The position numbers were made by a program, and so were the translations under genes. 64,000 nt of DNA from Chara braunii (lineage: Eukaryota; Plantae; Charophyceae), in assembly GCA_003427395.1 (NCBI GenBank), contig BFEA01000033.1, forward strand, positions 2,521,549 to 2,585,548. Reading direction: 5' to 3'. The notes beneath the pieces are model-generated. The model was given only the letters and a program-made list of their open reading frames with translations, did not search any database and was not told the DNA's origin. Numbering within the stretch: position 1 is the first letter of the stretch; every line of letters starts with the position of its first letter. Shown here piece by piece: positions 1,426 to 64,000 of the stretch.

Positions 1426-1546
1426 ACTTCCGCATGCGGATCAGCTGCCAGAATCATGTGTAGGTCGGCCCATCATTGCTCTTATCGATTTGTATTATGG
1501 GTATGATCAAGTCACACCACTTTCAGATTGTGCGTGGATCTATACA

Positions 1547-2030: not shown

Positions 2031-2039
2031 AAGTGGTCG

Positions 2040-4276: not shown

Positions 4277-4360
4277 ATGGCCCTTGTGTGAGTATAACAT
4301 GCATAAATGATATGACCCTTGTGTGAGTATAACACGCATAAATCGAGAAATGACAAAAAT
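4277..4360 (+). pseudogene. U6: U6 snRNA 3' segment, internally tandem-duplicated and degenerate
   Basis: ACACGCATAAATCGAGAAATG matches the plant U6 3' region as I recall it. It is preceded by two ATGRCCCTTGTGTGAGTATAAC copies resembling ATGGCCCCTGCGCAAGGATGAC. Confidence 0.75.
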
Positions 4361-5419: not shown

Positions 5420-5426
5420 TATAAAA
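5420..5426 (+). promoter_or_regulatory. Candidate TATA box of LTR copy A
   Basis: TATAAAA at the end of a block (GAGATTAAGGGCCCA...CCTCTCATGACTATAAAA) conserved with 45490-45569. Confidence 0.5.
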
Positions 5427-5524
5427 GCAACCCATTGCCTCAACCTTCTCAAAGTTATAAGACAATGATTCTGCCCATTTGCTATAAGGCAGATGCTGCA
5501 TCAGCTGAGGGGAGATGTTGTTGG

Positions 5525-5710
5525 AGACTGCAGGAAGTGAGGGGAGATGCTGGCGGAGCAACAGGTGGACTACAGGAAGTAAGGGGAGATGCTGAAGGAG
5601 CAACTGGTGGATTACAGGAAGTGAGGGGAGATGCTGGAAGAGCAACTGGTGGACTAGAGGAAATGAGGGGAGATGCTAGAGGAAGTGCTGGTCTGCAGGA
5701 AGTGAGGAGG
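5525..5710 (+). repeat. About 42-bp tandem repeat, 4-5 diverged copies
   Basis: GGACTRCAGGAAGTGAGGGGAGATGCTGGMGGAGCAACWGGT units; reads GGLQEVRGDAGGAT in ORF 5384-5809. Confidence 0.85.
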
Positions 5711-7805
5711 GGTGTTGCTATTGGCTATAGAGGTCTGCAGGTAGGGAAAGGGGTGTTGCTAAAAGAGAAGGAGGCTATGGTGATTAGTAGAGAGGAAGGT
5801 ATTAACTAGGTGGAAGAGAGGGAGTTCCCTCTACTAATGACAGAGTACTATGTGTGAGTCTACTTGGAAGGGGGAGGAAGACTAAGAAGAAAGGTGGTGA
5901 GAGAGAAGAGAGTTGAGGAAGTAGAACATACACAGTTCAACTTTATTTGAGGGAGAGTTCTCCTCTATTCAAGAGAAGAGAGTTAGAAAGAGAGAACTCA
6001 TGAGGGTGGAAGAAGAGGTTGGAGGGAAGATTGTAGAGAAGTTAGGGGAAGAAGAAGAGAGTTAACCTAATGAGGGAAGTAAGAGAGAAGGAGAAGTGAA
6101 GGAGGTTAAGAAAAACGGGGGGGGGGGGGGGGGGAACAAGGGTGTTATATTTGAAGAAGGAAAAAAACACAGGTGTTCTGAGGGGATAAATTTAATTTTT
6201 AAAAGAAGAAGATTGAAAAAAAAGGAAAAGAAAAGTTAAAGAACTGGAGTAAAATTGGTTGGTGGAGTTTGGAGAAGAAGAAAGAAAGAAAGTTGCTTCC
6301 CATAGCCAACCTCAAAAGTGGTTGCAGCAAGGGTAAGTGAGGTGTCTCGTAGAGGTGAAGGAAGTGAAAGGGGGAGGTTGCAACTAAAGTTGCAAGGATT
6401 GAAGAAAGAGATTGAGGAGAAAGGGAAGTAGAAGCCATAGTCAGGAGCTTCCACGACACCGTGGCGGTTGACGTGAGGGAGAAGATTAGAGTTAAGTTTA
6501 ATGTAAATAGGGAGGATTGGTGTTGTAGTGAGGGTCACGACACACAAAAGAATTGAAGAAGGAGAGTTAACAAGTGATCAGCAACCATAGTCGATCAACT
6601 TGATGGTCATAGCCAAAAGTTTGGCCGTGTAGCTGAAGCTTGGACGACCATAGATGAGGGGGGTGGAGATTCTCTAAGTGAGGCAGCAAAGTCGGCAAAT
6701 ACTCAAGGTCAGTTTGACTCGGGATTTTCTCCCCTTCACACCTACATAAACCGACATGTTGCATAACCTTTTTTTTTAATTCGAAAGAAAAAAAAAAGGA
6801 GGGGTTAGAAAGTGGTGCGTAAAGGTGGTTGTGAAGATGGGCGAAAACCTGACTACATGTGGGGGTTGTTTGTTTGTTTTTTTTCCTTTTTTGGACTTGT
6901 GATGACTATGGTGTGTGCAGGTATGTGGAGAGTGAAATGCATGCTTTGAGAAGGAGAAAGTAAACGGTTCGGATGCGTTTCTTTTCTATTTTTTCTCTTC
7001 ATCCGATGCATGATGTATAACTGAAGGGGGGCGCTAGGGGAACCGGAGAAGAAAAGTGTGAAAAGAAAGAGAAGACGAAGGGCATCAAGGAATGTAGTCT
7101 TTGCTCCTAAGGCAATTCGTTATATCATGAATGTCCATCTCCTTTCTAAATTTCCCTGTCAATTTTTATTTTCCCCTTTTCATCTAAGCTCCAAAGTCGT
7201 ACGGGAGGATGAAAGGGACAGTTCCGCTTTGGGCTCAATCATCCCCTCTCTTTAGGAAGCATCTAAGGTGGGGGTTCGTATGCTTTAGGAGTCGGCCTTG
7301 TTATCGACTTGGAGTGGACTCGATTCGTCGGGGGTGGTACTTTGTCGACTCGGTGGCAACGACCCAACCTCTGAGATTCAGGTCTTCGGGCTCGGGGAAG
7401 GGGAAGGAGTATCCACAAAGCACTTCCTATAGGTTTGGGTGCACGACGACACATAATGGGTTGGTCTTCCCCGAGTTTCGGGCGACGTGGGAGTTGATGA
7501 TGTAGTGCCCTTGCGAGTGACCACCTTAGGTGCCACCGTTGGATCAACAAGTTGGAGACATAAAACGTTTCAGCCCACAAGAAGGACTAGTCTTTAACGT
7601 TGATGCACGTAGGTGCCGCAGTCGTGGGTAGGTTCGCGCCATAAGAATCATGAGCCTTGGGTATCATAGGGGGACGTAGTTGACCTTTTTTTTTTTTTTT
7701 TGCGAAAAGGTCAATTTCCAACCTTTGGTTTTACCCTCTTACAAGTGAAGTCGTGCGGATTGTTCACAAACGTCGCGCGAGTCAGCGGTTACTATCTATT
7801 TTGAT

Positions 7806-8780
7806 ATGTGCGAAGAAAGGTTACCGCAATCAGGAGAACTGCGAACCAGTCTGACTAGGGTCGGTCGTTTGATTTATGACCCACCTGTGGCTTTCCCCGA
7901 GCAAGATGTGTCGTGCTTTTGGGGGGGTAGTTTGAGAAATCCCCCACGTAGCAATCTTTTCGCAAGGAGACGACTACAGCACATCAAATGTTTTGATTTC
8001 GCCCCGACCATGAAGGATGGGACCACATGTCTGATAGTGATACGCAACCAAGAATGCGATCCGAACGCAGAAACTGTCTCGGAGATAAGGTGGTTCCTCA
8101 TCAGGTTGCTCCTATATTTTAACAAGCAACATGGTCCGTTTCGACTCCTGGAGCATACCTTACAGATCCGAGCTAACCGGTTCAACTGGTATCAGATCGA
8201 GACTTTCATTCCAACATGACTCGAGGAAAAAGAGCGTAGGTTCTGGGAACTCGTCGGGGACTGACTTGGTGATATCATTGTGGCAGATGGATTTGACCAT
8301 TCCGAGGTACTTGCTGGTACGAGACATGACAAACACAGACAGAGAGACCATATATTGTCTTCGATGGCACACCGACAAAGTGGCTTGGATTCCTCAGCAT
8401 AGTCAGTGACAGGCGGGGTTTCTTTCCGGGGACTCGTGTAGAGATCCGAGTCGATGTGGCATGGTGTCCCGATGAGTTTCACGGTACACATTGTATTTTC
8501 AAAGGGTCAATGACATGACGCAATTCTCTCGGTGATCTTGGGGGTCTACATCACGACCACGGGGAGTCGTCACGGGTTTGTTCAGATATTGGAGACAATG
8601 ACGGCTCGATTGTCCAGGATGAGTAGGCCTTTTCGCGCCGTCATGTGGAGATTGGCCTATCAGGCGGCAATACTTTGTGACACTTGGGAGGTACGCGTAC
8701 AACATGGACAACATGCTAGCTCTACACCGAGTGAGGTGGCGACGGAGCGACCACGTAGGCGGCATTCGAGGTTACCCTGA
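7806..8780 (+). pseudogene. Frameshifted ORF of an unrecognised family inside LTR copy A (domains A and B)
   Basis: RLIYDPPVAFPEQDVSCFWGGSLRNPPRS...HGPFRLLEH...IRANRF and DLTIPRYLLVR...FFPGTR...LYFQRV...SRPFRAVMWRLA align with peptides at 47822-50130. Confidence 0.7.
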
Positions 8781-11210
8781 GGCTTGGGCATCTTAGTCGT
8801 GGCTTCGAGAAGGGTACTTTAAAAGAAAAAAAAATAAATAAAAAAATCACTCATACGTGCAACTGGATGGATAGTATCCGGTTCACCTCAATGATGACTC
8901 TCTCATACTTTGGCATTGAGGGGTAAACGATGAACAAGCGACGTGGTTTTTCCATGCATTCGGGCCAACTTCCCATGGACCCAAGGGTGCTTATTGGATT
9001 TTTAGTTGGACGGCGAAGTCTGACTCGGAGGCAATTGCCAAAGTCAAGCCCTTTGAATTATCTAAAGAGTTTCGTAGGTGCGGCCTCGCCCCTCGTATGG
9101 ATAACGATCCGCCGTCGTTGATGGTTGTGAACTACTTACAACCCTCATGCACAGGGTGCAGAAGAGGGTAGGTTATGTGGCCGCCGCGATCCTTTTTGAA
9201 AGTTAGGAGGTTGCCCTCTTAACGTCCCCAACAGTTAGCACTTGAACGTTAGAAGAAGCACGCTTGCGGGGCTATACAACTTGTCGTTTTTCCGATTCTC
9301 AGAGTTACCCATGGTCATTTATATCGATAGGCCCATGTTGCCATGCACTCATATTGGGAATCCCGCGGGGCGCTCACTCGCTCAAACCCGACCCAGTTAT
9401 GGGTCAGGCGAAAACAGGGATACTCTCACGAAGGATCAATTCGGCCTTGAATGCATTTCCCCAACGAGTCGATAAGGCTACCCATACATCAAGTGTTAAA
9501 TTTACTTTTCTCTAAGTCTTTCGTCGACAGGAGGTCGTCATCATAGACGAGAAGGTACTTAAGCCTCTCTAGGCCGCTCGAAAGACAGAGAAAAAAACTT
9601 GGTGAATTACTCCGGTGAGCTAAAGATTGTTCAGGGCCGGTTTCCGAGTCGGTTGGTGTTTTTTTGTCAGCACCGCCCGAGATGATTAAATTTGGAGAAT
9701 GTTGATTTTTTTTGCATGTGTGAGAAATGTAGAAGAGACTAGGATTTTGGGCGGTTTCACACTTCGTTGAGACCGTCCTATGCGCTAGGATTTTCGGGGG
9801 GGTTCACACTTGGTTGAGACCGTCCTAGTTGACCGGCGTCCACTCGTACTTAGGAGATCAATGTTCTAGGAAATTGACGACGTTCGGGTTCAGACTGCGT
9901 TTTAACCACGTTTGCCTATACTGCAACCAACGAGCAAACGCCCTCAGTTGACCTACCTCTGCAAATTACATATAAGCGTTTTCGCACGTGGGTAAGTAGT
10001 TGGGTAGGGATACGCCTTTAAAGGTGGTGACAACGCCTTAGGGAAGGCAAGTTGTGCCTCATGGAAACCTATCATGTTGGAGGGCACCACGAGAGGTACG
10101 GTTAGGGCGGCGAGGTGGCAATGTGACTGTGTCCGTTTCGGCGGCTCCTGGGAATTGTCTATGCGTTGGCCCCATGTTGTCTCCATTTTTTTTTTTAACT
10201 CTTCTGCGGCATAGTCGGGAGGGTTCCTTCTTTCTGTGAAAAAAATGGAGTTGATGCGCCTTATAACGTACATATTATTTAAATAGAACATACGTGCATA
10301 CTATTTCAACGTACGTACTATTTGGATTTTTTTTTTTTACTTTAAGAAATTTGATTTTTCCAAGGAAAATTGAATAGTACATACATGTGTTTTGTTTGGG
10401 GGAATATTGTAATTGATGTTCAACATAGATTAATTTTTTTTCATTTTTCTTAAAACTATGGGATTGATCATGCACAAAAGCTCATAGTATTAATTACGGT
10501 GATGAGGACGATAACTTTTTTTTTTTTTTTTTTCTAAATCGGAATCCTTTATCTTAGCAAATAGAAAACTGGTTGAAGTTGGGTTAGAGATTCAATGTAA
10601 TAATCATAGTTAACTTTATCTTCTTGAAATGTGATTTTAAGTGAAAATTTTTCAACTCGAACAAAAACTTTCATCAGATAGCACAACCTTTTGAAATCCT
10701 CAAGTGAGGTTTTACACAGAATAATTTTTTCAGCACCAGGTTTACCAATAAGATAAAGGTTGACTCTAACTCAAGGTAAAAAACCAACATCATTCCTAAT
10801 ACGAGACCAATCCTGCTCACCGTAAACCTTTTGAGCATATATTTATAAATTATTAGAAAATGTTATTCTTTATCAAGCAATATCAATCCCGTTTTTAACG
10901 AAATAGTTCAAAACAAAATTGTAATATACACTATAATTTTCAAACCAAAGTGGAGTCAACCCCACATGCAGCAACTCTCTTAGAATACAGGTTTCATGTA
11001 AACCTAACAAAACGACATAACCCAACATTTTGTATAAAATAAAAACGTTTGAGTCAAACTTTTATATCTGACAAAAAACGTTTTTAACCATTTATTGAGA
11101 TATAGGGCAAAAAAATGTGCAAAAAGTCAAACATTGTCGAGCAAATGGGTTCCCATTTTTCTCGCAAAATTTGAGAGCCCTCCCTGTCATGTCACGTAGA
11201 TCTTATTGCA

Positions 11211-11830
11211 ATGGGGAGATTGCTCAGGCAGGAAAAAGGGGTGCCCATGGAGAAAAGTAGCAGCCCACCCATGGCCTGTTTATTATGTATTTTTAACGAG
11301 GCAACATTTCTCGGCTCACTAGGGAAGGACAGGGCACTAATCCAGGGGGTTCGACTCGTCGACAACCTGTCGGTCTTTGTCTGGGAAGGGCCGACGAGGA
11401 AAGGGAGGGAGAGAGCGGAAGGTGTAATGAGGAAAGTAATGATAGAAACCTGCAGCTCAAAAGGACGGATGGGGGGAGGGAACCTGGACGTTCCTGGGCT
11501 GTGAGTTAAGAATTAGAAAGGAACCAAACAAAGTCGAGATTCGGTATAAAGGGAAAAACGAGGAGGACGTTTGGTCGGAAAGGTATACGTACCGGTCAAT
11601 GCAGAGCTTCGAGTCGTATTCGGATAAAAGGCAGAAAAATGGGTAATCAGTAGCGCTTTGGCACGGATTCGGGCCTGCACGACGACAGCCGAACTAGCGG
11701 AAATGCCCCTGTTGTCGTTAAGTAGGGAACTGAGGCTTCTTAGGTACCCCAGTGAATTTTTCAAGGGGACCTTGGGACGGTTCGTGGGACGGAAGGCACC
11801 AGAGTGGGAAAGGTTCAGGGAGATAGGCTA
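11211..11830 (+). mobile_element. Penelope-like element reverse transcriptase fragment (C-terminal palm and thumb), decayed
   Basis: RQEKGVPMEKSSSPPMACL resembles QxxGxxMGxxxSPxxA; RLVDNL resembles RYVDD; a downstream frame gives ALARIRACTT...LSRELRLLRYP, like a PLE thumb. Confidence 0.7.
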
Positions 11831-12938
11831 GGCAGGTCGGAGGGGATCAACTGTACTGAAACAGTTGTTCTCCTCCACTCCATACCAAAGAGGGTCGCCT
11901 ACCCCATGAGGATACTGGCATCTGGCGCCAGTTGAAACGTACATGGACAAGCCAGAACATCGCCAGTGTGAGAGTGGATGCTCGGGTTTTGACGAAGATA
12001 TTCGGAGATGGGTATGGCGGGCGGAGGCTGGTGATGTAAACGTGCTTAATGTTAATTTTCTTACGTGGCCCCTCGATTGGGCTTCTTGCCTATGAAGAGT
12101 GTTTTGGTGTGTATGTGGATGCATGACATCATGCATATTCTTCTTGGCTTCAGCGGCGCTTGCGCTCGCTCATTTGTTTACGTCCTTCCTTTTTCCACAT
12201 TTTTCTTTTTAACTTTTTTTTTTTTTTCATCTTTCCTCTGTTTTTTTTTCGTTTTTTTTGTTCCTCTGTTCACATCTGGTTGTCTTCTTGATGAATAACA
12301 GTCAATTACACTTAGAGTGTGTGGGAAACTACTTTAACAGTTTTCTAATAGTAAGAATTTTCTATTGTTGAGTTTCGTAACGTAAGTTAATTCTTCGACT
12401 CACGAACCCGCACATTGATTATTATTGGTTTGAAATTGAAAAATAGGAAAATATTGAGTTCGAAGTTTTTTATTCGAATAATGATCATTGAATAAAATTG
12501 TATAATATCTGACCTTTATACTCTCAACTCTCGCTGCTCAGTTTCATTTCTACGTACTGTTAATTTTTCAACCCGTTTGCTTCTACTTTCGTTCTCGAGT
12601 ACGTAGGTCAACATTTTTCCATACTGCGTTTCCAAGTTCGACATCAGGAAACCGACGATCCTAATTCTCGCAACTAATATGATATTTCCACTAGATCGCT
12701 ACCTTTTTTGTGCGAGTTTTTTTTTTTGTACATCCATTGTAAGTTTCGTATCGTAACTGACTTTTTGCTAAAAGGAACTTAGTGATGAAGTGACAATTCT
12801 TGAATATAAAAGGAAAGTTATTGTGAAAAAATTGTGGTGGTTAGTGAGTGGTATGAGGCGTCGAGTGTCAGTAACCTTTTTCTTTTTCATGTTTGTTATT
12901 CCTCTGGGTATTTTTCAATTGGAGTTTGGTGCTACTAT

Positions 12939-41439: not shown

Positions 41440-41880
41440 AACGTTTACCATCCCATACGTACGGAGGTTCACGGAGATTTGGCTCAGCCCAAAAAAAATG
41501 AAAATTTTGTAAATTTCCAGGGCATTTGGTTGTGTCAAAAAAAAATGAAAAAATGGCAAAGACAGCGTGTCGAAAACGTACCCATTCACTCACTAATTTC
41601 AATTCTATTTTTATTTTTATTTTTTTTAAGTTTTTATTTTTTTTTGGCTTTTAATTTTATTTCATATTTGGTAAGGAGTTTGGATGTAATGCTCTGGCAA
41701 ATGTTGTTTGTTTTATTTCTTTTCATAACATTATTTTTTTCACTTGTTTTTTTTTTTAATTTAATTTTATGTTTTTTTGGTCAACGTTCGGCCCGAAAGA
41801 TCGAAAGCATCCCAATGCGGGCCAACGTGGTCCCGTACGTTCGGGCGTTCGGGTTCGAGCGATGGGGTCGTCCTACTATA
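41440..41880. mobile_element. Degenerate copy of the (TA)n-associated TIR element family
   Basis: Shares TACGTACGGAGG, CGTTCGGGCGTTCGG and internal AT-rich blocks with 51270-52625; starts at a TA run. Confidence 0.55.
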
Positions 41881-41993: not shown

Positions 41994-42729
41994 CAAGGTT
42001 GCCGGCGTTCAGGACGGGCTGAACACCCGAACATACGGGACCCCTTCGAAAGGCGCTCGGCCGTTCGGGCCGAACGCGGACAAAAAAAAAAAAAAAAAAA
42101 GGTTTTCAAAAAATTCCAAAAAACAAAAATGTTATGGAGAAAAATAAAAAAAACAACATTTGCCTGGGCACTACATCCAAATTCTTTACCAATTTGCAAT
42201 TAAAAATCAAATACAGAACATAAACACTATGATAAAAATAAGAAAAAATAAAAAAAGGAATTAAAATGAGTGAGTGTGCCAGCACCTTTTCAACACCGCC
42301 ATCTTTGCCGATTGTTAATTATTTTTTGGCATTAACAAATGCCCTGAAAATTTACAGATATGTAGTTTACATAATTAGTAATTAAAAAAAAAATAAAAAA
42401 TAATAAATTTTTTTAGGCCCTAAATAAAGTGAAAACAAAAAGTTAAAAGTGAAAAAAAAACAAAATAGTAAGTGGGCGAACACGTTTTGACAACCCCATC
42501 TTTGACGATTTTTAATATTTTTCTGGCTTAGCAGAATAACTTCAAAATTTATAGGCGTGTAGGTTACATCATAGTAAACTCGCAAAAAAAAATTCAGAAA
42601 AACAAAACTTATTTTTAGGCCCCGAAAATTATTTTGGCGGGGGCCGAACCTGGAGGTGTTCGGCCCCCGAACGCCCGAATGTTCGGGGGCCAGCCCGGGG
42701 TCCCCCGAACGTTCGATCAGGTAACCATA
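41994..42729. mobile_element. TIR element with hAT-like termini embedded in (TA)n
   Basis: (TA)n|CAAGGTTGCC ... GGTAACCAT|(TA)n, with CCGAAC/GTTCGG subterminal motifs. Confidence 0.7.
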
Positions 42730-42992
42730 TATATATATATATATATATGCTGTGCCTCTAGTGCCAGCGGCGTGTCTGGAGTGTATTTTTTGGCTGTGAC
42801 AGACCTTTCTTTGTTTCGTGGNNNNNNNNNNNNNNNNNNNNNNNNNNNNNNNNNNNNNNNNNNNNNNNNNNNNNNNNNNNNNNNNNNNNNNNNNNNNNNN
42901 NNNNNNNNNNNNNNNNNNNNNNNNNNNNNNNNNNNNTTTGTTGTCCTCTTCTCCCTCTCTGCCTACGGTTTACCGGGCAGTTCTATTTGACG

Positions 42993-43029
<37 letters not shown>

Positions 43030-43189
43030 ACCACTCATTTGTTCTCCTTTTCTACCTGTCTGGCCCCAATACATGAGGGACATGTTTGCTTGCATGTTGG
43101 ATTTGTCACACTTTGAATCGGAGCGCAAAGACGGAAAATGACAAAACAGAAAAAGAACAGAAGTAAGAAACGAAAAACGTTGAAAAAAA

Positions 43190-43412
43190 CATTATCGCGC
43201 CGGCCCGTAAAGCAATAATGAAAAACAAAATGTAGAAGTGTTTTTTTTTAATATATAAACATGGTAAAGAATTTCGAGGTGACCCTGAGGCACTGGGGCT
43301 TGAGTTTCCTTTTCTGCGTAACATAGTTTTGTTTCTGTTATTTTTCGTATTTTGATTCAATTTGTAATTTGGCCTAGGGTTTCCGTGGTCCTTGCACGGT
43401 CGACTCTTTCAG
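43190..43412. mobile_element. Left part of the host repeat interrupted by LTR copy B; continues at 51201-51240
   Basis: GTGACCCTGAGGCA...CTGCGTAACATAG matches about 63732-63780; TCCGTGGTCCTTGCACGGTCG matches the reverse complement of about 63545-63565. Confidence 0.7.
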
Positions 43413-44193
43413 TGTCGGGACAAAAACCCTGACAAGGGTATCTGCCCTGTATTTTCAATGTCGGACGATGTCCGAATTCTAAAGTAAGTTTTGTTTTGAA
43501 AAGATTCGGTTTGATGAAATGAAAACGTTGTTGGAAGGTATTTCGACTTGTTCGCAATTGAAGAAATTTAATTTATGTAGTCGTTTATTTGCTGATAGAC
43601 ATAACAACAAGGGTAGACGGTATAGCGTGACACTCTTACGTTGAAATAAGGTCGAAAAAGAGAGACGGCGGCAAAAACATTAAAATAAATTAAGTCGCGG
43701 GATTCAGGACTAAAAAGATAAAAAATTAGCCGCACCAGGAGCGACATCGGATGAAAGGACTAACACGACCAGAAGTGTCGTGTCATTCCTAAAGGAAACG
43801 GACCGTCAAGGATCCGAGGGCAAACCTATGACTAAAGGGGGATTGTTGTGCCTACGAGATCAAGCCTAGCCGGCAAGATGGTGTGGCGACTACCTTGGGA
43901 AGGGGTAGGCAGGCTGCATCTACCCAGATCAGAGGAAGGCAGGACTGGGCCTGCCTAAGCTAGGAAATAGGCGGCCTACTGGGCCGGATGACAGACATAG
44001 CTCCCGCTATAGGAGCTAGCCAGTAGGTACCACATTCGAACTTTCACCCAGCAGACGCCGGGATCGAGCCGTACGAGGCACTACCTGGGTTAGCTCCTTT
44101 TTGGAGCTGCCCATCTTATAAACAGAAAAGTGCGGTCATTTTCGGTCGCAAGATCATCGGATCTCATGGCCAAAAATGGCCGCGCTGGTACAA

Positions 44194-44248
44194 CATGACC
44201 CGACACAAGGATGACATTCATAAATCGAGAAATGACCAATTTTTTTTC
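44194..44248 (+). pseudogene. U6: U6 snRNA 3' segment with oligo-T
   Basis: CAAGGATGACATTCATAAATCGAGAAATGACCAATTTTTTTT versus plant U6 CAAGGATGACACGCATAAATCGAGAAATGGTCCAAATTTT. Confidence 0.85.
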
Positions 44249-44358
44249 GATTCCCCAACAGGAATCGAGCTTGGGTCTGCTCATCAGAAAGAGGAGGGGA
44301 GGTGCCAACAAGGAACAACACGTGCAACCGTGGCCGTTGGTCTATGTCAATGACACTT

Positions 44359-44445
<87 letters not shown>

Positions 44446-44453
44446 AAAAAAAA

Positions 44454-44506
<53 letters not shown>

Positions 44507-45562
44507 AAAGGAGAAAACACGAACGGCGCCAGATGGCGCACCAAGAAGAACAGGGACTTACAGTCCCTGAAAAGCAGGCGCTATTTTCAACAATCTGAGA
44601 TCGTTTTCGATTTTGTTTTCCTCTTCTTTTATATTTTTTTTCTTTTTATATTATTTTTTCTTTTTTTTTTATTATTCCTCTTCGTTTTCTCTTTCCCCAT
44701 TCGTGACCGTTGAGGCACGGCCAGCAAGGAAAACGAGGAAGGGTTGAAAACAAAATAAACTAAAAACAAAACGAGGTTGTTGCCTCAAGGTTGGAAAGAA
44801 TAGCCTTTTCGGTTGTGTGGGGGCACAACAACGCTCTCACTTCATTCTGGGTCGAATATTTTCGATCCTGGGATCTTTGATCCCACAGCCTGTGAAGACG
44901 CGCGTGAAGGTGGAGGTTGAAGAGGTTGAGAGAGGGGGAACATGGGAGTTGGGAGGAGGAGGTCCTAATCCTTCCAACCTGCCAACTGCCCTCCCTGTTT
45001 TTAGGGGAAGGGCAGAGGGAAATAAGGAAGGGGTTGTCGTATGCAACATCATGCACTTGGCTGAGGTATGGACCAGGTGTAATATAGTTAGGATTAGTTT
45101 TATTTGTATTTTTCTTTTAGTTTATTTTCTTTATTTATGTGAGGACACGTGTCCTCACGTAGTGCTATTAACTGCCAGGCTCCCGTTTTTAGAGGGAGCC
45201 TAAAATTTGAGGGGTCATGAAGGGAAAAGACTAAGTACAACCTTTTCCCCGATGTATCTGCCTTGGAAAAAAGGTCCAGGTACATCAAACTGAAAGGGTT
45301 GTATCTCTCCAACCCCTTATCAGAAAAATAAAAGAAAAACACTTTTTGGAAATTGCAAAAGTCCAACTACCTCGTGAAATTCCGAGATAGCTGGGAAAAA
45401 GAAAAAAAAAAGAAAATGAGGGCAGTTAAAGAAGCTGCCCTCACTAAGGTTGTGCGTGTGGTGCGGCCATAGTTAGCCATGGATCTTGGTCAGATCAAGG
45501 GCTCACGGTAAGACCGCGATTTTGCCTGGGGGCTGGAGTGACATCCAACCCTCCTCAACCAC

Positions 45563-45569
45563 TATAAAA
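45563..45569 (+). promoter_or_regulatory. Candidate TATA box of LTR copy B
   Basis: TATAAAA at the position homologous to 5420. Confidence 0.5.
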
Positions 45570-47821
45570 CAGGCAACTGTCCCCAACTTCCACACAAAGC
45601 ACTCCTGCTGCCAGTGTGTGACGAGCACACTTGAGTGTTGCTAGGCTACTGGAGATGCTGCCTGAGGCAACGTGGGAGGAGGCTGGAGGTCTGCAGAGGA
45701 GCGCGAGGAGAGGAGTTGGGCAGTCATAGCCAAGGCAGGAAGCACTCTGCTCCCCTTCCCTCTCTCTGGTGCTGGTTCCACGGGACTGACCGAGGGACGT
45801 TGCGGGACTACGACGGTACGACACTATGAGATTTGGGCCTGGGGCGAAAATTTTATTAATTTTGGTCAACCATTTTTTCCACTTTAGTCCGAAAATGTTG
45901 CCAAAATTTTACAGCAGCGGGTAAGCGGAGGCAAGGCTGTTGACAATGGTACCGGCGGATCAGACCTGTTGCAAGCCTTTTTTTTTTTTTTACTCGCGTA
46001 GGGAGGTGCTGGTGAAATTTTACGGCAATGAGTGGCGGGCGGCTAGGCTGTTGGCGGCGGCACCAGGCTGAACAAATTTGCGGCAAGTTATTTTCCCCAT
46101 TTCTTTGGAAAAGAGCTGCATTTTTTTTTTTTTAATGCCAATGGTAATAATTTTGGCGGCGTTATGCTACCGAAATTCAAGGTTGTCAGGATAAACCAAG
46201 TGAAAGGGAAGTGCTGACCATCGACGGCGACGACAGTAATTACTGCTCTTGAGTGAAAAACAGTGGGAAAGTGACATTTATTTTTTTTGTTACAGCAAAA
46301 GGCGAAACGTTGTGCATTGTCCAAGTAGGGACGAGTGGGACCGGTGAGACACGTGAGTGGAACAAGCAGTACCGGCAAAAGGGAGAGTGGTCCTTTATTT
46401 TTTTTTAGAACCAGGGGAGACTGTTTTGATAAGCGACATCATATGGAAGTGAAAAAGGAAGACGTGGGACTGCCTGGAACTACTTGGCACTAGTGGGCAT
46501 CACCGCGAACCACTCTGTACCAGTTGGTACTAACGCGGACCACTTGGTATTACTTGGCACAGGTGTGGGACGCCTGGAACTAGTTGGGACTCGTGGGACT
46601 TACCGTCTTCGTGTTTGGGACTGCCGCAAGAAGTATTCATGAGTCGGGTGTTGAGCGGGACTTACGTGCGCAGTTTATACCCAAGGTAGTAGTTTCCTCG
46701 ACGAGGCGCGTAGGTTACTTGAGTTCTTTTACTTGAAAGAGGTCTCAGTCGAACTTTCGTTAGTCAAGGTTAGTGGTTGGCATGGATCCCTCGCACCTGT
46801 GTGTACCCTCACGATGTATGACCCTTCTCTTTTTCTTTTGGATGCTCAGAGAAAAGCTGAAAGGAAAGAAAGTGTGATGGGGCATGCTTGTGTGAGACTT
46901 TGGGTCTGACTTGGGTTATACTTTCGTGATTAAACTCGTTGAATGTTGACTTTGCTTTGCATGCAGGTGTGTGAAAAGGGAAAAGTACTGATAAGGAAAA
47001 TTCCAGTTTTACTTATTGAAATTGTGAAAACGTTGAATGTTTCTTCTATCTTTTCTCTGTGATGTCTTCACTTGTCTCATAAAGTAACACTCGAACTATG
47101 GATGGGAAAAGTAACCGGGGTCGAAAAAAGAATTCGGAATATAAAGGAAAGGGAATGAAGGAACTTAGTTATCCCTGAGGTTCCCTTTCTATCTCGAATG
47201 ACTCTCTCGACCTACTCCCCGTCCAAACAAGTCTTCACTATATCTCCTTCCTTCTCTGCATTTCTGATTCGTCTAAGTTGTTTCCCTCGTATTGAGGTCC
47301 AGGGTAGTCGATCTGATTCTGAGTATGAGGGCTCCCTCTTTCTAGGAGGAAATTCGGGGAAAAGGTTGTTGCTTTAGGAGCCGACCCTGTTACGGATCCG
47401 GAGTGGATCGTTTTTACGGGGGAGTACTTTGCCGATTCGGTGGAGACGGCCCCACTATTGAGATCCGAGCTTTTGGCTCGGGTGAGGACGAGCAGTACTC
47501 CAGACCACCTCCTAAAAATTGGGACGCGTGACGGTAAGGAATCGAAATTGATTTTTCCCTGTACCTTTATACAGGGAAAATACTAAAAATTAATACCCTT
47601 CTCAGTTGCCACCTTACGTGTCACTAACGTATGGAGAACTGGTGTTAAAAGAAGCCCAACTCATGTACTTACTAGTGCCAGAAAGAGTGCCAATAGGCAC
47701 AACTTTTCGTGGTCGGACCGTGGCATATGAATCATGGTCTAAAAAAGGGGACATAGGTAAAATAATAATATAAATAAATTTTATTTTTTTATTTTGACAA
47801 AGTGATTATTCTGTCATCTAG

Positions 47822-50130
47822 ATGTCTACGAGAGCGGTTATCATTCAGTTATTCTGTACGCATGAAGCAGCAATGAACTGGATAACAGTGCCGACACGAT
47901 CCCGTGCGGGCATGATGCAGGAAGAACGTCTAGTCTACAAACTGCACGAAGATTTTTCGGAATAGGATGAACCGCGATTTTGGGACGGAAGTTTGATAAA
48001 TCCTCCACGAAGTTATGTTTTTAGGGCAGAACGTAAACTTTTCATGGTGCGATATGATTTCATATCCCCTTTTCCGATACGAGATTTTAAGGATATGAAT
48101 TTCGTCGTAGTTTATGAAGCGAATCCCAATAAGGAGGACGCTGCGGAGGTTAGAAGAATGTTCCTTGGTATTTTGTTGAACGACTGACAAGGTCCTTTCC
48201 GTTTGCTTTATCATGTGAGGCGGATCCAGGCCAACAGGTTTGATATCCTTGACTCTTAACGGTTTTCGATTGACGCAATCGATGATAAGGAATACGAAAT
48301 CGGGGAACATCTACGTGATTGACGTTTTGTATAATTAATAACTGGTCAATGAAAGGAAGTTAGAAAAATAAATATTCAAGGAAATTTTGTTATGTTTCTC
48401 ATAAAAAACTACTCGTGTTCTTTTCTCCAGATGCGTACGGTAACCGCCATCATCATGTTATTTTCAAACAGGGAGGTTGCCGCAAGATACATAGTTCAAG
48501 CAGGAAGGCGAGGTGTAATTTTAGAGCAAATCGGTCGAATGGTCTACAACCTGATCGTCGTGTTTCCTCCATGACGAGAATTGAGGACTAATCACGGCAT
48601 GGTAAGGACCTCACCATGAACTTTCTTGTTTATCACCTCCACTTACCAACAAATTTTCGAACCGAACTTTGTTCGAATTCGACGGTCGGGCCAGGATAAC
48701 CTGCGCATAGTATTTGGGTACGAGGATAATGAGTTGCATGTCTATTTCCATCATGAGATAAGATGAATATATTTGAGACTCGTTCTGTATTACAATGCCC
48801 TCGTAGGTCGTTTTGATGAGATCGAGTTCATAGAGCGAATTCGAGTCAATTGCTTTGAAGATTCATGAAGAGAAAGGTTTGACATAACCACCTATTGTAA
48901 CCGACTGAGTTATTTGTGACGACTCCTTGGTGCATAAAATAAATCAGTTGTATAAAAAAATAAAAACAACTCACAATACTTTGGCCGAGTTGCTACCATT
49001 TCTGACGAAAGTTTGGTCGAATTTTACAAATGATGTGTGAAACAGTGATAGTAACTCTCTTTCACACACGTGAGGAGGCAAGTGAATGGATATCAAGCAC
49101 TGAAGACAATGGGATTGGCTTGATGTAGACAGGACGGCTAGTATACAATCCATCTGTCGTATTTTCCGAAAGCCCGAAAGGGACAAACCACGATTCTTGC
49201 GATGAAACTTGAGGCGTCCTTCAAGAAGTTACTTAAGTAGTACTACCTATGGATGAGACATTGTTCGATATGGGTTTGCCCCTCGATGAAACTTTGATGG
49301 TGCATATTTGATGGTTCGGCACAGCGAAGGATCGGGGCGATACGTTGAAAATATTCCTGAAGTGAAATGGTCCTTCTTAATTATTCTGCTACGTTTCAAC
49401 GCGCTGCATGGACCCTTCGATTATGTTCATCATTATCATCGGACTCCAAATGACAGATTTCGACGCTTTAGACGGATCGTTTTCTCTGTGGCAGAGTTCG
49501 AGCGTGAGGAACGCCGATTGTTTTCGTTGATCAACTCTTAATTGTGGTTCTCTTTTTGAGCAAATGGACGGCGATCGACGAGATCTTACCATGGCGAGAT
49601 ATCTTCTTGTTCGTAACACACACGAGGATGATCTAATCAGAGGAGCAAAGCGACTTTTGCGGGTTCGGGATGACACTCCTACCCAGAGGATCGGTTTCAT
49701 CGGGCTACTGCGAAACGACGAGCGGTTTTTCCCTAACACTCGCGCGGATTTTCGGGCCAATACAACTCTAACTCCTGAGGAGTTTTATGGATATATGTTG
49801 TATTTCCACCGCGCAAGTAACCTCCAATGTCTCTCTCAAGTCATTGCGAGCATTAAGATTACCTCATCCGGTTGACGTTTCGACGTCGTTCGGATCCGAG
49901 ATACAGAAACCTGACACTTATTTGGATTGAGTCGGCCTCTTCGATTCATAGTGTGGAGACTAGCCTCATGGATGACCTCCCTCTATGGTACTCGAATAGT
50001 TAGAGTTATGTGAGGTGTACGGATGGCGACCCTGGTATTCGACGACGACGAACTTGCGTGATTGGATTTGTTGGACGCTCAGGTGTGCGAGGACGACATA
50101 TTTACCAGGGTTAAACATCGTCTTTTGTAA
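47822..50130 (+). pseudogene. Decayed ORF cluster of an unrecognised family inside LTR copy B (domains A, C, A', B)
   Basis: RLVYKLHEDFSE*DEPRFWDGSLINPPRSY...QGPFRLLYH...IQANRF (47822-48330); second A copy RLVYNPS...DKPRF...PSRSY...HGPF (about 49130-49530); DLTMARYLLVR...FFPNTR...LYFHRA...SRPLRFIVWRLA (49564-50130). Confidence 0.7.
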
Positions 50131-51269
50131 ACTTTACTTGATTCCGGAAAAATGCCTCGCATAGACTAGTCCCGTCGAGGAAGCCATATGACTTACAGTT
50201 TCACGAGGTAATCTCAAAAACAAAACCAAAAACACTCCATGTGCATAGGGTCGTCGGATGGATAGTATTCGCCTTGGCATTGAGGGGTAAATACATAAAA
50301 ACGGAAAAGTAAACAAATACGTTTCATCGTTTTGAAGTTACCTTTAAACTTTTTTTTTTTTGCAGGAAACAAATAGGGCAAACTTAAAATTACAGGGCAA
50401 CTTGAAACGCGACCCTGAAATGAGACATAAAAATGTCTGACTATAAACGTGAATTTAAAGGATTGAAGGAATTTTTCTCTATACGTTTTCAACAAAAAAA
50501 GTTTTTGGTTTTTTTGAGACTACATCAACGACAAGAAGGAATTACTCGAGCATGATCTTTTCATCAAACGAAATCAATCATATTAAATATTGTGTTGAGT
50601 TTTCACAACTGTGATTATTGAGATGATTGACTGAAAGGATGATTTTTTATATATATGTATTGCGTTATTAAGGATATACGTGACTTTGCCTTGATTGATA
50701 CTTTTTACGTGTATGTATGGGACTAGGATGAAAGTCGTGGTTTCCACGCTTGATTTAGACCGCCCTAGTCGACCGGTGTGTGCTTCATCCTTAGGAGATC
50801 AGCGCCCTAAGTAACGAACGACGTCTGGGTTCAGTAGGCGTTTTAATCGCGTGTACCTATACTACAGCGAGCGAGCAAAAGCCCTCGGCTGACTCACCTT
50901 TGCGATTGCATGTAAAAACGTTCGCACGTGGGTCAGTGGCTTGGTGGGATACGCCACTAAGGGTGATGACAATCCCTTAAGGAATAAGGTTTATGCCCCG
51001 TGGAAACCTATCCTGTTGTAGGGGGCCGCGGGATGTACGGTTGGCGCACCCGGCTAGAGCGGCGAAGGGACGACGCGACCTCGAAGGTCTCGGTGACTCG
51101 TGGGATTATTTATGCATCGTCCCCAAGTTGTCTCTTTGTTTTGCTTTTGTTCAACTCCCGCCTCTTCGTGAGAAAAAGGCGGGGGCGGATGCGCTCGACA
51201 CCGGTAGAACAGGGTCACCTGGGCGAACTGGCTGGTAGCATAACACACATACACACGCACATATATATA

Positions 51270-52625
51270 TAGGGTCACCAGCCTGTACGTACGGAGGTCC
51301 CCGGACCGACCTCCGTACGTACAGGCGTTCGGGGTCTCGTCGGGGTCCGAACCCGAAGGCGTTTTGGCCCCCCCCAAAAATTATTTCGGGTCCTAATTTT
51401 TTTTTTATTATAAAGATTTTGTTATGTGAGCTCTCTATGACGTGAGGTACATGCCTATAAAGTTTGATGTCATTTAGCTCAGCAAAATAAGAATAAAAAA
51501 TCGCCAAAGATGGTGGTGTCAAAACTTGCTCGCCCACCTTTTGTTTCACTTTTTACTTTTTGTTTTCATTTTAGTTCGGGGTCTAAACAATTTTTTTATT
51601 TTTTGAAATATTTTTAGTGGCTTTTGTATTATGCGAAGCACACATCTGTAGATTTTCAGGGCATTTGGCTATGCCAAAAAAAAACATAAATAATCTTCGA
51701 AGATAGCGATGTCGAAAACGTGCTTGCGCACTCATTAATTTTTTTATTTATTTTTTTTACTTAGTATTTGTTCTCCGTATTTTATTTTTATTTCAAATTT
51801 GATAAGGAATTCGGATGTGATGCTAAGGCAAATCTTGTTTAATTTATTTTTTTGTCCGCGTTCGGCCCGAACGGCCGAACGCATCCCCAAGGGGTCCCAT
51901 ACGTTCGGGCGTTTGGGATGGGCCGAACACCCGAACCCGAACGCCCGAACGTTTGGGACCCCCTCTCGACGCGTTCGGACGTTCGGCTGAACGTGNNNNN
52001 NNNNNNNNNNNNNNNNNNNNNNNNNNNNNNNNNNNNNNNNNNNNNNNNNNNNNNNNNNNNNNNNNNNNNNNNNNNNNNNNNNNNNNNNNNNNNNNNNNNN
52101 NNNNNNNNNNNNNNNNNNNNNNNNNNNNNNNNNNNNNNNNNNNNNNNNNNNNNNNNNNNNNNNNNNNNNNNNNNNNNNNNNNNNNNNNNNNNNNNNNNNN
52201 NNNNNNNNNNNNNNNNNNNNNNNNTGCCATGAAATTTTATACATATGTATCTTACATAATAGAGAACCTACAAATAAAGTTTGAAAAAATAATAATTTTT
52301 TTCAGGCCCCGAAATAAAGGAAAAACAAAAAGTGAAAAGAGAAAAAAAACAAATTAGTAAGTGGGAAAGCAAGTTTTGACACCACCATCTTTGCCGATTT
52401 TTCATTATTGTTTGGCCCCACAGAATGATTTCAAAATTGAGAGACAGGTATCTTACATAACAGAGAACTCTCAAAAAACAAATCAGAAAAAAATAATAAT
52501 TTTTAGGTACCAAAATATTTTTTTGTGGGGTCCGCCTTCGAGTTCAGGCCCTGTACGGGGACCCGAACGCCCGAACGTTCAGGGGTCAGCTTAGGGGCCT
52601 CCGTACGTTCGGCCTGGCAACTCTG
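51270..52625. mobile_element. TIR element with hAT-like termini embedded in (TA)n; contains a gap
   Basis: TAGGGTCACCAGCCTGTACGTACGGAGG ... CCTCCGTACGTTCGGCCTGGCAACTCTG inverted termini, with TA runs on both sides. Confidence 0.75.
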
Positions 52626-54237
52626 TATATATATATATATATATCGTGAAAAAAATATAAGAGCACAAAAGGGAAAAAAATAAATAAAATATCAAAAATA
52701 AAACTCGGAGTTTTTTGTTTTTTTAATCTTCTTCTTTACAACTCCCCCTCTTCAAAACCTCTTTCGTACATGACCGCACACGTCGATGTAGGTTGAACGA
52801 CAACTTCCCCCACCCCCGTGTGTCATATGAACCAACATGCATACAACCAAAAGGCAAAGAGGCAAAGAAAAAAAGAAGGCAATAACCAAACAAAACAAAA
52901 TATCATCAATGTTTTGACACACCCTTGTCTTCTTCTTCCCCTTCTTTTGCTTTTACTTCCTCTTCTTCTACTTCTTCATCTTCTTCGTCTTCAATTTCCT
53001 CTTCTTTCTTTCGTCTACTTCCTATCCACATCGCGTTGATGCTGATCTGCAGGTTTGTCTGTCGCGACAGGCCGCTGGTGCGCCACAACCGAATAAAATA
53101 ACAAAATACGAATAAAACTCAGTATATATATATATATATATATATACATATATCATCACAAAGTTATCAAATCATATTCATCTTCTTACTTACACCCCCC
53201 CCCCTGTTCAGAACCTATTGTGTACAAGGTCTCCCACGTGAATGTGGTTGAGCGGTGGCTGTCCCCCACCCCCGTGGAAGATATTGACCTACTTGCCCAC
53301 ATCCAAAAGGCAAAGAGGCAAAGAAAAAAGGAATGTCGTCACAACGTTATCACACTGCAAAAACGATAAAATTCAAAACGATAAAAAACAAGGTTAGGGG
53401 TTACATAACTCACTTCTTTCATCCATGCAAACACATGACGACTCGAACTGGCGCAGTGAGCCCACACAGAGTTGACAGATAAGAATGTCACCAAGAACAA
53501 ACTTCTGATTGAACTTGTCAACAATGCCAATAACTTATTACAAGTTATCTACACACAACTCACCGCTACCTACGATAACCATGAATGTCCCTCACACACA
53601 CACACGCACACACGACACGAAGGCCCTATGTCTTACCTGTGTGGCAACTATGACTGTCGTATCCGTCGTGACTAAGCTGGCGGCTATGGTATCAACCCAC
53701 ACGCACTCGAGATGCAGGTATGGATTCCGTTCTCGCTAAGGTATTAGCTATGTCCGTATTATTTGCTATTTTTTCTCATTTTTGTTTTTTTGAAAACCTC
53801 TGCCTCTCCCTTCGGCAAACAAGCGGCCCTAAACACGGCCACCAAATCTCATCACCGCCATTGCCATCACCACCCCCTCCTCCTTTGTCATCCATCGTTG
53901 GTAGCGAGTGCAGATAACCGTTGGTGGGAGCAGGAACGATCCACGGATCTACGTGGGAGTAAGTCGCAGCTATGGCTGCCCACCCGAATGGACCGTGCAT
54001 TGGATCGACTCCCCAACCGCCATTCACCTGGTCGTAGGAATGTGGAAGGTTGCCTCATCCCCCGCCTTGTTCTTCTTCCACGCCGACCGTCGTTGTAGGT
54101 GGTGGAGGGAGAGGTGAAGAGACGGCGGGCAGAGTCGTAGATGGGGTCCCCTCGCCAACTGCCGGTGTTGAAGACGTGGACGGCAACGTTGCCGTCATTC
54201 GTATAGTCGTCGCGCCACTATCGTCTGCCATCTGCTT

Positions 54238-56872: not shown

Positions 56873-58065
56873 TATATATTTGTTTTTTTTTTCCCCTTAT
56901 ATTCTTCTCTCAAATATTTCATCATCTTTCAAATTCTTTCAATTCACATTGACTACCTACCTATCACTACTCCTAAGTCTTATACATGGGACCCCTGTGA
57001 ACATAACTTTGTTGTCTCCCTCCAACTTTTTTTTTTTTTTTAATCTTTAAACAAGTGGACCCGCCGCAGCAAAGTTGCGACACAGAAAAGGGGCGTGAGG
57101 CGAGGCAGGCAGGAAGGGAATTGGGCAGCAAGCAAATATGCAGATGAAGGCCGCAAAAGAAAAAAAAAAAATGATAGCGAGACTATTGAAAGGAAATTTT
57201 TAAAATCACAGTTGGAGGAAAGTTGGAGAGAGGACCACCAGATCCGGGAAAAACAAATATGGTTTCATGGAAGGGAGACAAAAAAAAAAAGTCAAGGTTT
57301 CACCGAAGGGGGAAAAAAAAAAGGAGGCTAGGCTAACAAGCTTCATGTCGGGATCTCATGGACAATCAGGGATCGATTCCCGAGTGCAACCGGACGTTGA
57401 TCGTACACGCCTCCTCCTCCTCCTCCTTTTCCTCTCCTAGACCTTTCGTGTCTCTTCCTCCTCTCTCTCCCCCTCCTCCTTCACTTTTTCACCTCTACCG
57501 TCTCTCCCAAAAACCAAGTCCAATCATTCAACGAAGTATGAATGAAATTCAATAGATGAGATGTTGCAAAATCACCAAGGCGGGAGGGGGCAGGGGGGGA
57601 ACGGAGGAGGAGGAGGTTGAAAAGGACAATGAGCCGAGAGGGAGTCTAATGTGGACGATGGAAATTTACGATCAAGATAACGATGATGATGATCAGGCAT
57701 AAGCGAGGAGGGGGGAAGAGGAGAAGAGGATGGAGGAAAGAGGATGTAGGAGCAAGGAGTAGTGAGAGTAGTCGGGGCGATGAGGAGGATGCAGAGGTGA
57801 AGAGAGGAGTGGGAATGGCAGGAGGAGCGGGAGAGGGAGGAAGAGGACGATGAGGAGGAAGAGGTGAGGAAGCGGATAGCGCAGAGGAAGTGGAGGACGA
57901 GGAGGAGGAGGATGGAGGGAAGAGGAGATCGCAGCAAGCAGCAGAGGAGACGTTGGGAGAGGAAAAGATGGTCGGGACGAGGAGGAGAGGGAGTCACGAA
58001 AAAAGTGGAGGAGGATGTCGAGGAAGTGGAGGAGCAGGAGGAGAAAGAGGAGCAAGAGGCGGGAT

Positions 58066-58157
58066 GAGATATCCCTTAAAGTTGGAATGATAAAAAGATG
58101 ATTAGCATGGCCCCTGCGTAAGGATGACAAGCATAAATCAAAAGATGGTCAAAAATT
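58066..58157 (+). pseudogene. U6: U6 snRNA pseudogene, nearly full length, 5' stem missing
   Basis: TTGGAATGATAAAAAGATGATTAGCATGGCCCCTGCGTAAGGATGACAAGCATAAATC; the ACAGAGA box is mutated to AAAAAGA. Confidence 0.92.
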
Positions 58158-60197
58158 CTCAAAATTAAGAAGAAAAAAAAGATGGAACATACTTCTACAA
58201 TTTTCCATTTTCTTGAGAATCGAACATACTTTTACGATTTCCCATCTTCTGACAACAAATAAATAAAAAATGATAAAGATGAGAGGGGAGGAGGAGGAGG
58301 AAGAGGAGACTGGGGAGGAGGAGGAAGAGGAGAGCGGGGAGGAGGAGGAGGAGGAAGGCGGGGAAAGGGAAGAAGAAGAACAACGAAAGATGGGGAGGAG
58401 CTCGGCCTCGCGNNNNNNNNNNNNNNNNNNNNNNNNNNNNNNNNNNNNNNNNNNNNNNNNNNNNNNNNNNNNNNNNNNNNNNNNNNNNNNNNNNNNNNNN
58501 NNNNNNNNNNNNNNNNNNNNNNNNNNNNNNNNNNNNNNNNNNNNNNNNNNNNNNNNNNNNNNNNNGGGAGAGGGGGGGAGGGGGAGAGGACGATGCGCAA
58601 CAGGAGGAGGTCAACGAACCGGAGGAGGAGGAGATTGGGGGTCTTGGTAGCAAGAGGCAGGACAAGTGGAAAGAGGAGGGGGAGGATGACCATTGGCAGG
58701 ATCGGGAGTAGGAAAAGATGAGCCGCGGTCTGATTGTCATTGACACATCAGGAAAAATGGATGAAACACCCTGTTACGTGGATCCATAGTGACGTGGAGG
58801 GTTCACACACGTCGGTGCATAACGTTGGGGCACGTGCTCTTTGGTAGACTCCCCACCCCCCGGGAAGTATTGTGCAAGGTGCATTGCCAACAAGATTATT
58901 TTCATTGAATTTCATGTTTCACTTATCCTCAAGCCTCCATAGTTCCTGCCACTTGGCCACGTGACCTTCCACGCATCCCCTCTGTCCCACTTTCTGACTT
59001 AGATACTGTGTCATGTGCCTTCAACTACCCTGCTCCATTCCACATGGCAAGCAACCCCCCCATCCTATCTTGCCCGAATCACATCACCACCAGCATGCAC
59101 ACTGCTCCGTCCGTGGTGTTGACTCCATTGCCACCCTGGTGAAACACGAACCACTGCGCCGTGGCAGCCACTCTATCCCTCCATAGATGGTAGACCGTAG
59201 ACCCAACGCCAAACCCCGTAATCGCGAGTCAGAAACCAAAAAATTGGAGACTCTATTACTCCGTAGACCGTTGATGGAACACAAAAGCCCGCGAGCCCAA
59301 AATAGGAACCCAAGGCACACCTCCAAATATGACAGCTCATCCCCTTTCCCTCTCCTCGCCTTCCCTTCTCGGTCCGCGATGGCAGCTTCCAGCCATGGCT
59401 CGCTGTGATAGCACACATGCACATGTGCGAATAGCCCCTCCCATCCTTCTCGATCCGCACGTCTGTAAGTACCCCCGTTCGTCCTGCTTCCATTCCAGAA
59501 ACTTCGCAGCACCAGCCACAGACAATTTCGTTGGGCCCGGCCTTTTCCCAGGCAGCCCTTGAACGTGCGCCCTCACGGGAACTGCTCCCCATGACCCCGA
59601 AATGCTTCCGCCACGGCATGCCGCCCTTCAAACTCGCATGGACAAAAAAAACTAAAACTGCCATTTCTGCGAATTTCCCTTGGGCCTGCGCCTTGTCCCC
59701 CGCCATTTTCCCAACACAGGCAGCCCGGGTTGGCGGCAACATTACGCAAGACCCACTGTTTCCTTTATAAAGAGTATAGATATAGATAGAAAACTACGCT
59801 ATATTCTTCTCTCAAATTTTTCATCATCTTTCAAATTCTTTCAATTCACCTTCACTACCTACCTACCACTACTCCTAAGCCTTATACAGGGGACCCCTGC
59901 AAACATAGCTTTGTTGTCTCCCTCCAGCTATCAGAGGGGATGCATGTTGCCCTCGGTCCCAACCATGGTGGTCAAGGATGGGGACGATGAAAAGGGAGGC
60001 GCAGCTACTGTCAAAATGATTGGTTGTTGCGTTGCCGGACCTCCAGCCATTTGTCTTGGAATGAATGGACTAGTACCTCCGCCAGTGTTGGGAAATTAGG
60101 AAAAACTGGCAGTTTCCCCAAACTCCTAAAGTTTCGGAGGTCGGGCCTGACGACGACTGCCATTGATATTGATATGATATTGATAAATCTGATAATC

Positions 60198-63498: not shown

Positions 63499-64000
63499 GG
63501 CTACCAGCCGGGCCGCCCGGATCACCTTGTTTTCCCGGGCGGCCCGACCGTGCAAGGACCACGGAGGGTCCCAGCAAAAAGGGAAAAGAACAGAAAAATC
63601 AAAAAAATCCTAGGCTACCAGAGTGGCCCGGGGCCACTTGCCCGGCCGGGCCAAAAACAAATAAAAAAATAAAAATAAAAATTATTTTTTGAACTTTATT
63701 TTTTATTTTAAATATGGCAAAGAATTTGAATGTGACCCTGAGGCAAAAGTTGTTCAGTTTATTTTTCTGCATAACATAGTTTTTTTTTGATTTTTTTCGA
63801 GGCTATCAGAGGAGCCTGGGTCCACTTGCCCGGCTGGGCCAAAAAAAAAAAAAAAAAAAAGAATATAATTAGTTTTTAATTTATTTTTTTATTTGAAATT
63901 TTGTAAAGATTTTCGATGTGACCCTGAAGCAAAAGTTGTTTAGTTTATTTTTGTGCATAACATAGATTTTTTCCGGATTTTTTTTTTTTTTTTTGAATGG
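63499..64000 (+). mobile_element. GGCTACCAG-terminated repeat with about 190-bp internal duplication; runs off the window
   Basis: Two units of GGCTAYCAGAG...CCACTTGCCCGGC...GTGACCCTGA...GCATAACATAG; homologous to 43190-43412 and 51201-51240. Confidence 0.65.

Follow-up and report, generated by a model that had tools for sequence, protein, structure and literature searches.

A 7.8-kb repeat unit of Chara braunii, probably the solo long terminal repeat of a giant-LTR Ty3/Gypsy family

In a 64,000-nucleotide stretch of the Chara braunii genome (contig BFEA01000033.1, assembly GCA_003427395.1; hereafter the window), we analysed a 7,788-nt unit on the plus strand (43413-51200), called A, which is most probably the solo long terminal repeat (LTR) of a Ty3/Gypsy retrotransposon family with giant LTRs. 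A reading made from the sequence alone had proposed such a giant solo LTR, and our results support it. One and the same repeat end was seen after an integrase gene in a second unit of the window (B), before a primer-binding site in a contig from outside the window (L118), and alone in A, and the repeat thus behaves as an LTR. Within the set of copies compared, this end shared by L118, B and A in three contexts is the main independent support for the LTR reading.

The ends of A had been placed correctly: the unit starts with TGTCGGG at 43413 and its CTCGACA finishes at 51200, the 3' terminus being GATGCGCTCGACA (51188-51200). Taken as inverted repeats, the two termini match at six of seven bases. 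A sensitive self-comparison with 7-nt seeds detected no direct repeats joining the two ends in A or B, and therefore no hidden short LTRs in either; internal short LTRs, as in large retrotransposon derivatives (LARD) or terminal-repeat retrotransposons in miniature (TRIM), had been named as a sign against a solo LTR, and A has none. Neither gag nor pol was found inside A, either with 54 six-frame pieces of at least 55 residues, which gave only chance-level Pfam matches and no transposon enzyme domain, or with the pol pieces of B as queries, none of which matched. The flanks of A, including the right one at 51201-51245, carry no primer-binding site, and a search of the rest of the window for another family member, a primer site or additional pol sequence found none.

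Unit B (3804-10265, plus strand), which is collinear with A, would be the 6.5-kb 3' LTR of a decayed Gypsy element; where it starts on the 5' side is a matter of inference, and homology to A is provable from 4326 on. It lies immediately downstream of a decayed Ty3/Gypsy pol (1202-3803, plus strand), recognised from translations, Pfam, and structure and protein matches. Within this pol, the reverse transcriptase motifs (1202-1546), the RNase H end (1964-2341) and the integrase zinc finger (2659-2847) are visible by eye in the translations alone and had no Pfam or PDB match. The integrase core (3034-3462) matched Pfam rve (E 0.011), the prototype foamy virus (PFV) integrase (2e-8) and the Ty3 Gag-Pol polyprotein (1.5e-6), and is followed by an SH3 domain (3466-3777; Pfam SH3_Tf2-1, E 6e-4) with no chromodomain after it; both Pfam matches stay under the curated cut-offs and stand in the correct order. 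The succession of reverse transcriptase, RNase H and integrase, of which the first two were read by eye and the last is supported by tools, is that of Gypsy elements. An integrase relative, P0003 (L123), is 76% identical to that of B, and a protein search with the integrase core had a 1-kb JGI contig as its only match. The reverse transcriptase is too decayed for phylogenetic placement. A 136-nt tandem array (1592-1971; 2.8 copies, 85% matches) occupies its expected middle.

The proposal that B starts right after the integrase stop holds for the ancestral frame, which, aligned with L123, ends at the TGA of 3801-3803 and directly abuts 3804; the present stop, at 3778, follows a 1-nt deletion. 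No post-pol region was found in B, the integrase stop adjoining the LTR. When the sequence ahead of B was searched for a repeat of the terminal LTR bases, only GTTGATG was found in common, which is at chance level.

The 3' end of the family lies in a conserved block (50620-51200 in A, plus strand) that occupies a U5-like position and exceeds all other blocks in genomic abundance. The last ~480 nt of A and B align well with their ends in register, and four copies (A, B, L118 and L001, a further unit of the C. braunii genome) stay in register up to ...GATGC(G/A)CTCGACA and diverge afterwards. L001 and L118 terminate in CTCGACA like A. The end motif said to be common to A and B is only partly kept, as B shares GATGCGC and then reads CTTATA, a decayed form, in place of the last six bases TCGACA.

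We found L118 (BFBZ01010409.1; 1,749 nt; NCBI assembly GCA_003427375.1) by scanning a metagenome collection with a 15-mer of the 3' block. It matches A, B and L001 at 73-75% and is the only true relative among the 120 loci holding the 15-mer; the other 119 were chance matches. Aligned in register with A, B and L001, its homology stops at ...GCCGATGCGCTCGACA, and the LTR end is followed by GG and then by a 19-nt tRNA-Asp primer site, TGGCGCCGTTGCCGGGGAT. L118 hence shows the family end in the 5' LTR position, 2 nt ahead of the primer site. Such a site is absent from the flanks of A, B and L001, and a scan of viral contigs for the LTR end plus primer site found none. The ~880 nt of L118 past the primer site (866-1749) show no convincing open reading frame (ORF) and no similarity to the interior of B; they may represent an extended leader or belong to the inside of a non-autonomous element. 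In consensus folds built from three sequences only, 10 of 117 pairs in the 3' block (50735-51145; B 9797-10195; L001 11494-11900) and 6 of 54 pairs in the core described below (47330-47520) change on both sides and stay paired; we read this as a hint of structured leader RNA and not as an established result.

Judged from its alignment, L001 (GCA_003427395.1) is a second giant unit, collinear with A over its readable length. Positions 6499-11894 align to A 44634-51135 in collinear blocks of 75-79%, and a weaker block extends the match back to A 44011. The unit ends with GATGCACTCGACA at ~11975 and is ~7.7 kb long by offset, its 5' end being lost in an assembly gap; its right flank lacks a primer site and runs into 5 kb of N. 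One block common to A and L001 (44634-45920, plus strand, 75% identity) includes a high-copy sub-block at 45500-45899.

By the same kind of comparison, B is a true but distant relative of A, with much less homology than the term "collinear homologue", used for 3804-10265 in the sequence-only reading, implies: the order is kept, and the nucleotide homology is patchy. A blastn search with word size 11 gave two blocks between A and B, and a sensitive search gave five collinear blocks of 57-73%, among them one of 563 nt at the 3' end (67%), one of 297 nt in the central core (64%) and a few short ones. By tblastx, the likeness follows a plus-strand coding region at 31-40% identity, and what lies outside the nucleotide blocks is alike only as protein (30-40%). 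A and B nonetheless share the order U6 fragment, core, ORF1, ORF2 and 3' block. The core is a conserved, high-copy, non-coding stretch of ~175 nt (47333-47509, plus strand), ~300 nt upstream of the first ORF, with identities of 78% between A and L001, 78% between B and L001, and 64-72% between A and B directly; it may be a promoter or leader element. Upstream of the core, tandem arrays occur in B (42-nt units, 5526-5707) and L001 (~108-nt units, 7785-8142); A has just a weak 111-nt pair at the same region (45873-46094).

The claim that these LTRs carry their own cargo also stands: inside the repeat lie a U6 fragment and ORF families whose protein sequence is conserved. ORF1 is intact in L001 (170 residues, 9465-9977), and the other copies were located by tblastn with it. 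Unit A carries three in tandem, all decayed and on the plus strand: 47822-48319, interrupted by stop codons (34% over 170 residues, E 6e-25), 48413-48856 (30% over 151 residues, E 3.5e-8) and 49021-49445 (27-34% in two pieces, E 3e-10). B and L001 have one copy each, that of B being decayed (7806-8261, plus strand; match 7851-8261, E 2.8e-21). ORF2 of A (49531-50016, plus strand) has a frameshift after 49872, and its decayed counterpart in B lies in pieces at 8089-8708 (plus strand; tblastx between A and B at 8357-8708, 36-40%). Over the ORF1/ORF2 region the DNA of A and B barely aligns, and conservation is at the protein level only.

Neither ORF family has a Pfam match or a solved relative. 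The intact ORF1 of L001 gave no homolog by protein search and no usable Atlas match, and its AlphaFold model, with a predicted local distance difference test (pLDDT) score of 50, is unusable for fold comparison. Searched against 1.8 billion representatives, ORF1 of B retrieved P0002 only, a repetitive chance match that we rejected. For ORF2, the protein search returned only P0001 (C. braunii CBR_g49381), whose residues 1-81 are 68% identical to ORF2 of A and which is the closest protein to any ORF of A. P0001 is a chimeric gene model (L001 10001-20030): its residues 1-81 are the LTR's ORF2, and its RFC1-like AAA lid (residues 91-139) belongs to an exon on the far side of a 5-kb gap.

The U6 fragment of A (44192-44246, plus strand) corresponds to the 3' part of the U6 small nuclear RNA (snRNA) and scores 25.3 bits in Rfam (E 0.0053), below the gathering score. 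U6-related stretches also occur in B, as tandem 35-mers (4275-4343), and in L001, where they were read by eye. A full-length U6 snRNA gene lies 7 kb from A (58064-58159, plus strand; 67.9 bits in Rfam against a gathering score of 44). More speculatively, and as a possibility to which we give well under even weight, ORF1 and ORF2 might be working accessory genes expressed from the LTR, with their copy number within the LTR under selection; the LTR would then be a gene-carrying module, of the longest class described.

DNA runs under a single species label contain 44-70% of the sampled words of A, and we regard the window as nuclear DNA of C. braunii. The family is abundant. When Logan contigs of two DNA runs were aligned to 45300-51290 at a likeness of at least 80%, 6,729 and 7,490 contigs were placed, and ~100 distinct contigs carried the family majority letter at single positions. 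Summed depth reached 8,000-37,000 on 45500-45899, 47300-47499, 49700-50099 and 50700-51099 and was 100-700 elsewhere, and single contigs of A's own locus had a depth of 6-18. Summed depth does not equal copy number and gives an order of magnitude only; in this sense, the conserved blocks have hundreds to thousands of copies and A's own subfamily has tens. At 40 listed sites of the same interval where almost every family copy departs from A, A shows 16 transitions with A/T for G/C, 8 in the reverse direction and 16 transversions, a bias that mildly suggests C-to-T decay of an old copy.

The insertion site was examined by joining the flanks of A (42937-43412 and 51201-51900) and searching them against the window. 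The single match, at 63565-63500 on the reverse strand (74% over 70 nt, E 2.8e-6), crosses the junction, and bears out the earlier claim that the joined flanks match an uninterrupted repeat. This empty-site paralog (63500-63565, minus strand) aligns with the left half of the interrupted host repeat (43372-43412, plus strand) up to the junction and continues in the right half (51201-51245, plus strand), the insertion point lying within a GC-rich palindrome of the host repeat. The left flank tracks the paralog to its single CCGG, where it reads TCAG (43409-43412), and the right flank begins at that CCGG. Around the site, copies of a ~600-nt repeat of ~70% identity occur at 42140-42738 (minus), 51261-51851 (plus), 52225-52634 (minus) and 41508-41722 (plus), and carry CCCGAACG...CGTTCGGG palindromes and (TA)n. 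Since this repeat is inverted on both sides of A, the unit sits in a foldback-like repeat cluster.

Taken together, these observations would fit a scenario in which a Ty3/Gypsy retrotransposon with LTRs of ~6.5-8 kb integrated into an older host repeat, at its GC-rich palindrome. Its two LTRs would later have recombined and the interior been lost, leaving A as a single copy that then decayed. In the layout we infer, a long U3 would comprise the variable 5' part and the U6 fragment, the core near 47333-47509 may hold the promoter, and a long R-U5 would contain ORF1 and ORF2 plus the conserved 3' block.

Several points weigh against the solo-LTR reading. None of the elements seen had two giant copies enclosing a single interior, the 5' LTR of B lying beyond the window and L001 being broken by assembly gaps, and L118 covers only the last ~470 nt of its LTR and is silent on that LTR's length. 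Over their initial 0.5-0.8 kb, A, B and L001 show no significant likeness; the expectation of fixed ends is borne out at the 3' end, in four copies, and the 5' end is defined in A alone. A clear polypurine tract was not found before 3804, where there is just AGAGG in the last integrase codons; with the integrase stop abutting 3804, there is no room for a separate tract. The two copies of the putative 4-bp target duplication, TCAG and CCGG, are equal at two of four bases. A duplication with TCAG as the decayed and CCGG as the intact copy is plausible but unproven, and its plausibility comes from the last 11 bases of the left flank, which have already diverged from the paralog by five transitions and two transversions. 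Finally, the 583 reads of one oligo-dT RNA run, mostly less than 90% alike and from both strands, fall on the same blocks as the DNA in proportion to DNA depth, without pile-ups at starts or ends and without splice joints, and therefore leave U3, R and U5 undefined. Such a signal would be expected if many copies were transcribed diffusely, or if DNA had been carried over.

We weighed three other explanations of A, each of which we regard as improbable. An LTR of ordinary size, with A inflated by nested insertions or locally acquired DNA, would account for the 1.3 kb by which A exceeds B, due in part to three tandem ORF1 copies against one, and for the microsatellites and U6 fragment in A. L001, however, is ~7.7 kb long and collinear with A from ~44011 to the end, and B keeps the order from U6 fragment to 3' block; the content was hence inherited within the family, not acquired locally, and we think such inflation unlikely. 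About as unlikely, or slightly more so, is that A is a complete non-autonomous element of the LARD or TRIM type, its own LTRs decayed or too short and its ORF region being the interior. The lack of enzymes in A and its ORFs of unknown function would suit such an element, but the missing end-linking direct repeats, even with 7-nt seeds in A and B, the primer site of L118 2 nt past the very end of the unit, and the start of B at the integrase stop together place the whole unit in the position of an LTR.

Ginger elements are cut-and-paste DNA transposons that end in TGT...ACA, make a 4-bp duplication and have an integrase resembling that of Gypsy; they have terminal inverted repeats of tens to hundreds of base pairs and an integrase without reverse transcriptase. 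The TGTCG...CGACA ends of A, a possible 4-bp duplication and the integrase adjoining B would allow A to be a transposon of this kind and B the end of an autonomous copy. Yet the inverted termini of A are only 7 nt long, the end in L118 is followed by a tRNA-Asp primer site, reverse transcriptase and RNase H motifs (by eye) precede the integrase in Gypsy order, and B lies downstream of the integrase in direct, not inverted, orientation. We consider this explanation very improbable, the least likely of the three, and favour the solo LTR.

LTRs are usually regulatory repeats of 0.1-2 kb. If our reading is true, a high-copy algal family with LTRs of 6.5-7.8 kb widens their known size range, and LTR protein genes conserved across subfamilies beyond the alignability of their DNA lead one to ask by what means repeats of this length persist through reverse transcription and recombination. 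The ORF products would be candidate accessory proteins of retroelements. Standard LTR finders limit LTR length and would therefore miss such a family, whose copies would be wrongly annotated, either as unknown repeats or, like P0001, as chimeric genes; this bears on the annotation of the 2-Gb Chara genome.

Literature searches for Chara LTR elements found no description of this family, although a mention in the Chara genome paper is possible. One account gives LTR lengths "from 80 bp to more than 5 kb" and calls those above 3 kb uncommon (PMC3485330), and the longest plant LTRs that a review discusses are those of Ogre, at 1.9-6.5 kb (PMC6431247). A (7.8 kb) and L001 (~7.7 kb) lie above the upper Ogre value and B equals it. 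Like Ogre, a member of the Tat clade of dicots, the Chara family is a high-copy, non-chromovirus Gypsy lineage with very long LTRs and extra ORFs of unknown function. It differs in the length of its repeat, up to 7.7-7.8 kb, in its host, a streptophyte alga, in its tRNA-Asp primer site, and in the position of its extra ORFs, which occupy the LTR itself instead of the space from LTR to gag.

The primer site points to a second likeness: the 19-nt site of L118 is identical to the published tRNA-Asp primer site of peanut FIDEL (PMC2844528), and it opens with the 13-nt primer-site string of ATHILA (bioRxiv 10.64898/2026.03.20.713144). The absence of a chromodomain after the SH3 domain of B is a further resemblance to these elements. 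In contrast, LTRs typically measure 1-2 kb in ATHILA and 1.5 kb in FIDEL, an env-like or post-pol region is present in ATHILA where the integrase stop of B abuts the LTR, and the spacer between LTR and primer site is GG in L118, as opposed to the reported AT-rich 3-6 nt of ATHILA.

Retrosat2, a Gypsy family of rice (PMC3485330), resembles the Chara family in its abundance, in LTRs of unusual length (more than 3.2 kb) and in having an ORF whose function is unknown; the Chara LTRs are at least twice as long. A protein gene inside the LTR is also found in mouse mammary tumour virus, an animal retrovirus whose 1.3-kb LTR holds a single ORF (sag). In the Chara family, by comparison, the 7.8-kb LTR holds two ORF families, and one of these is present in three tandem copies.

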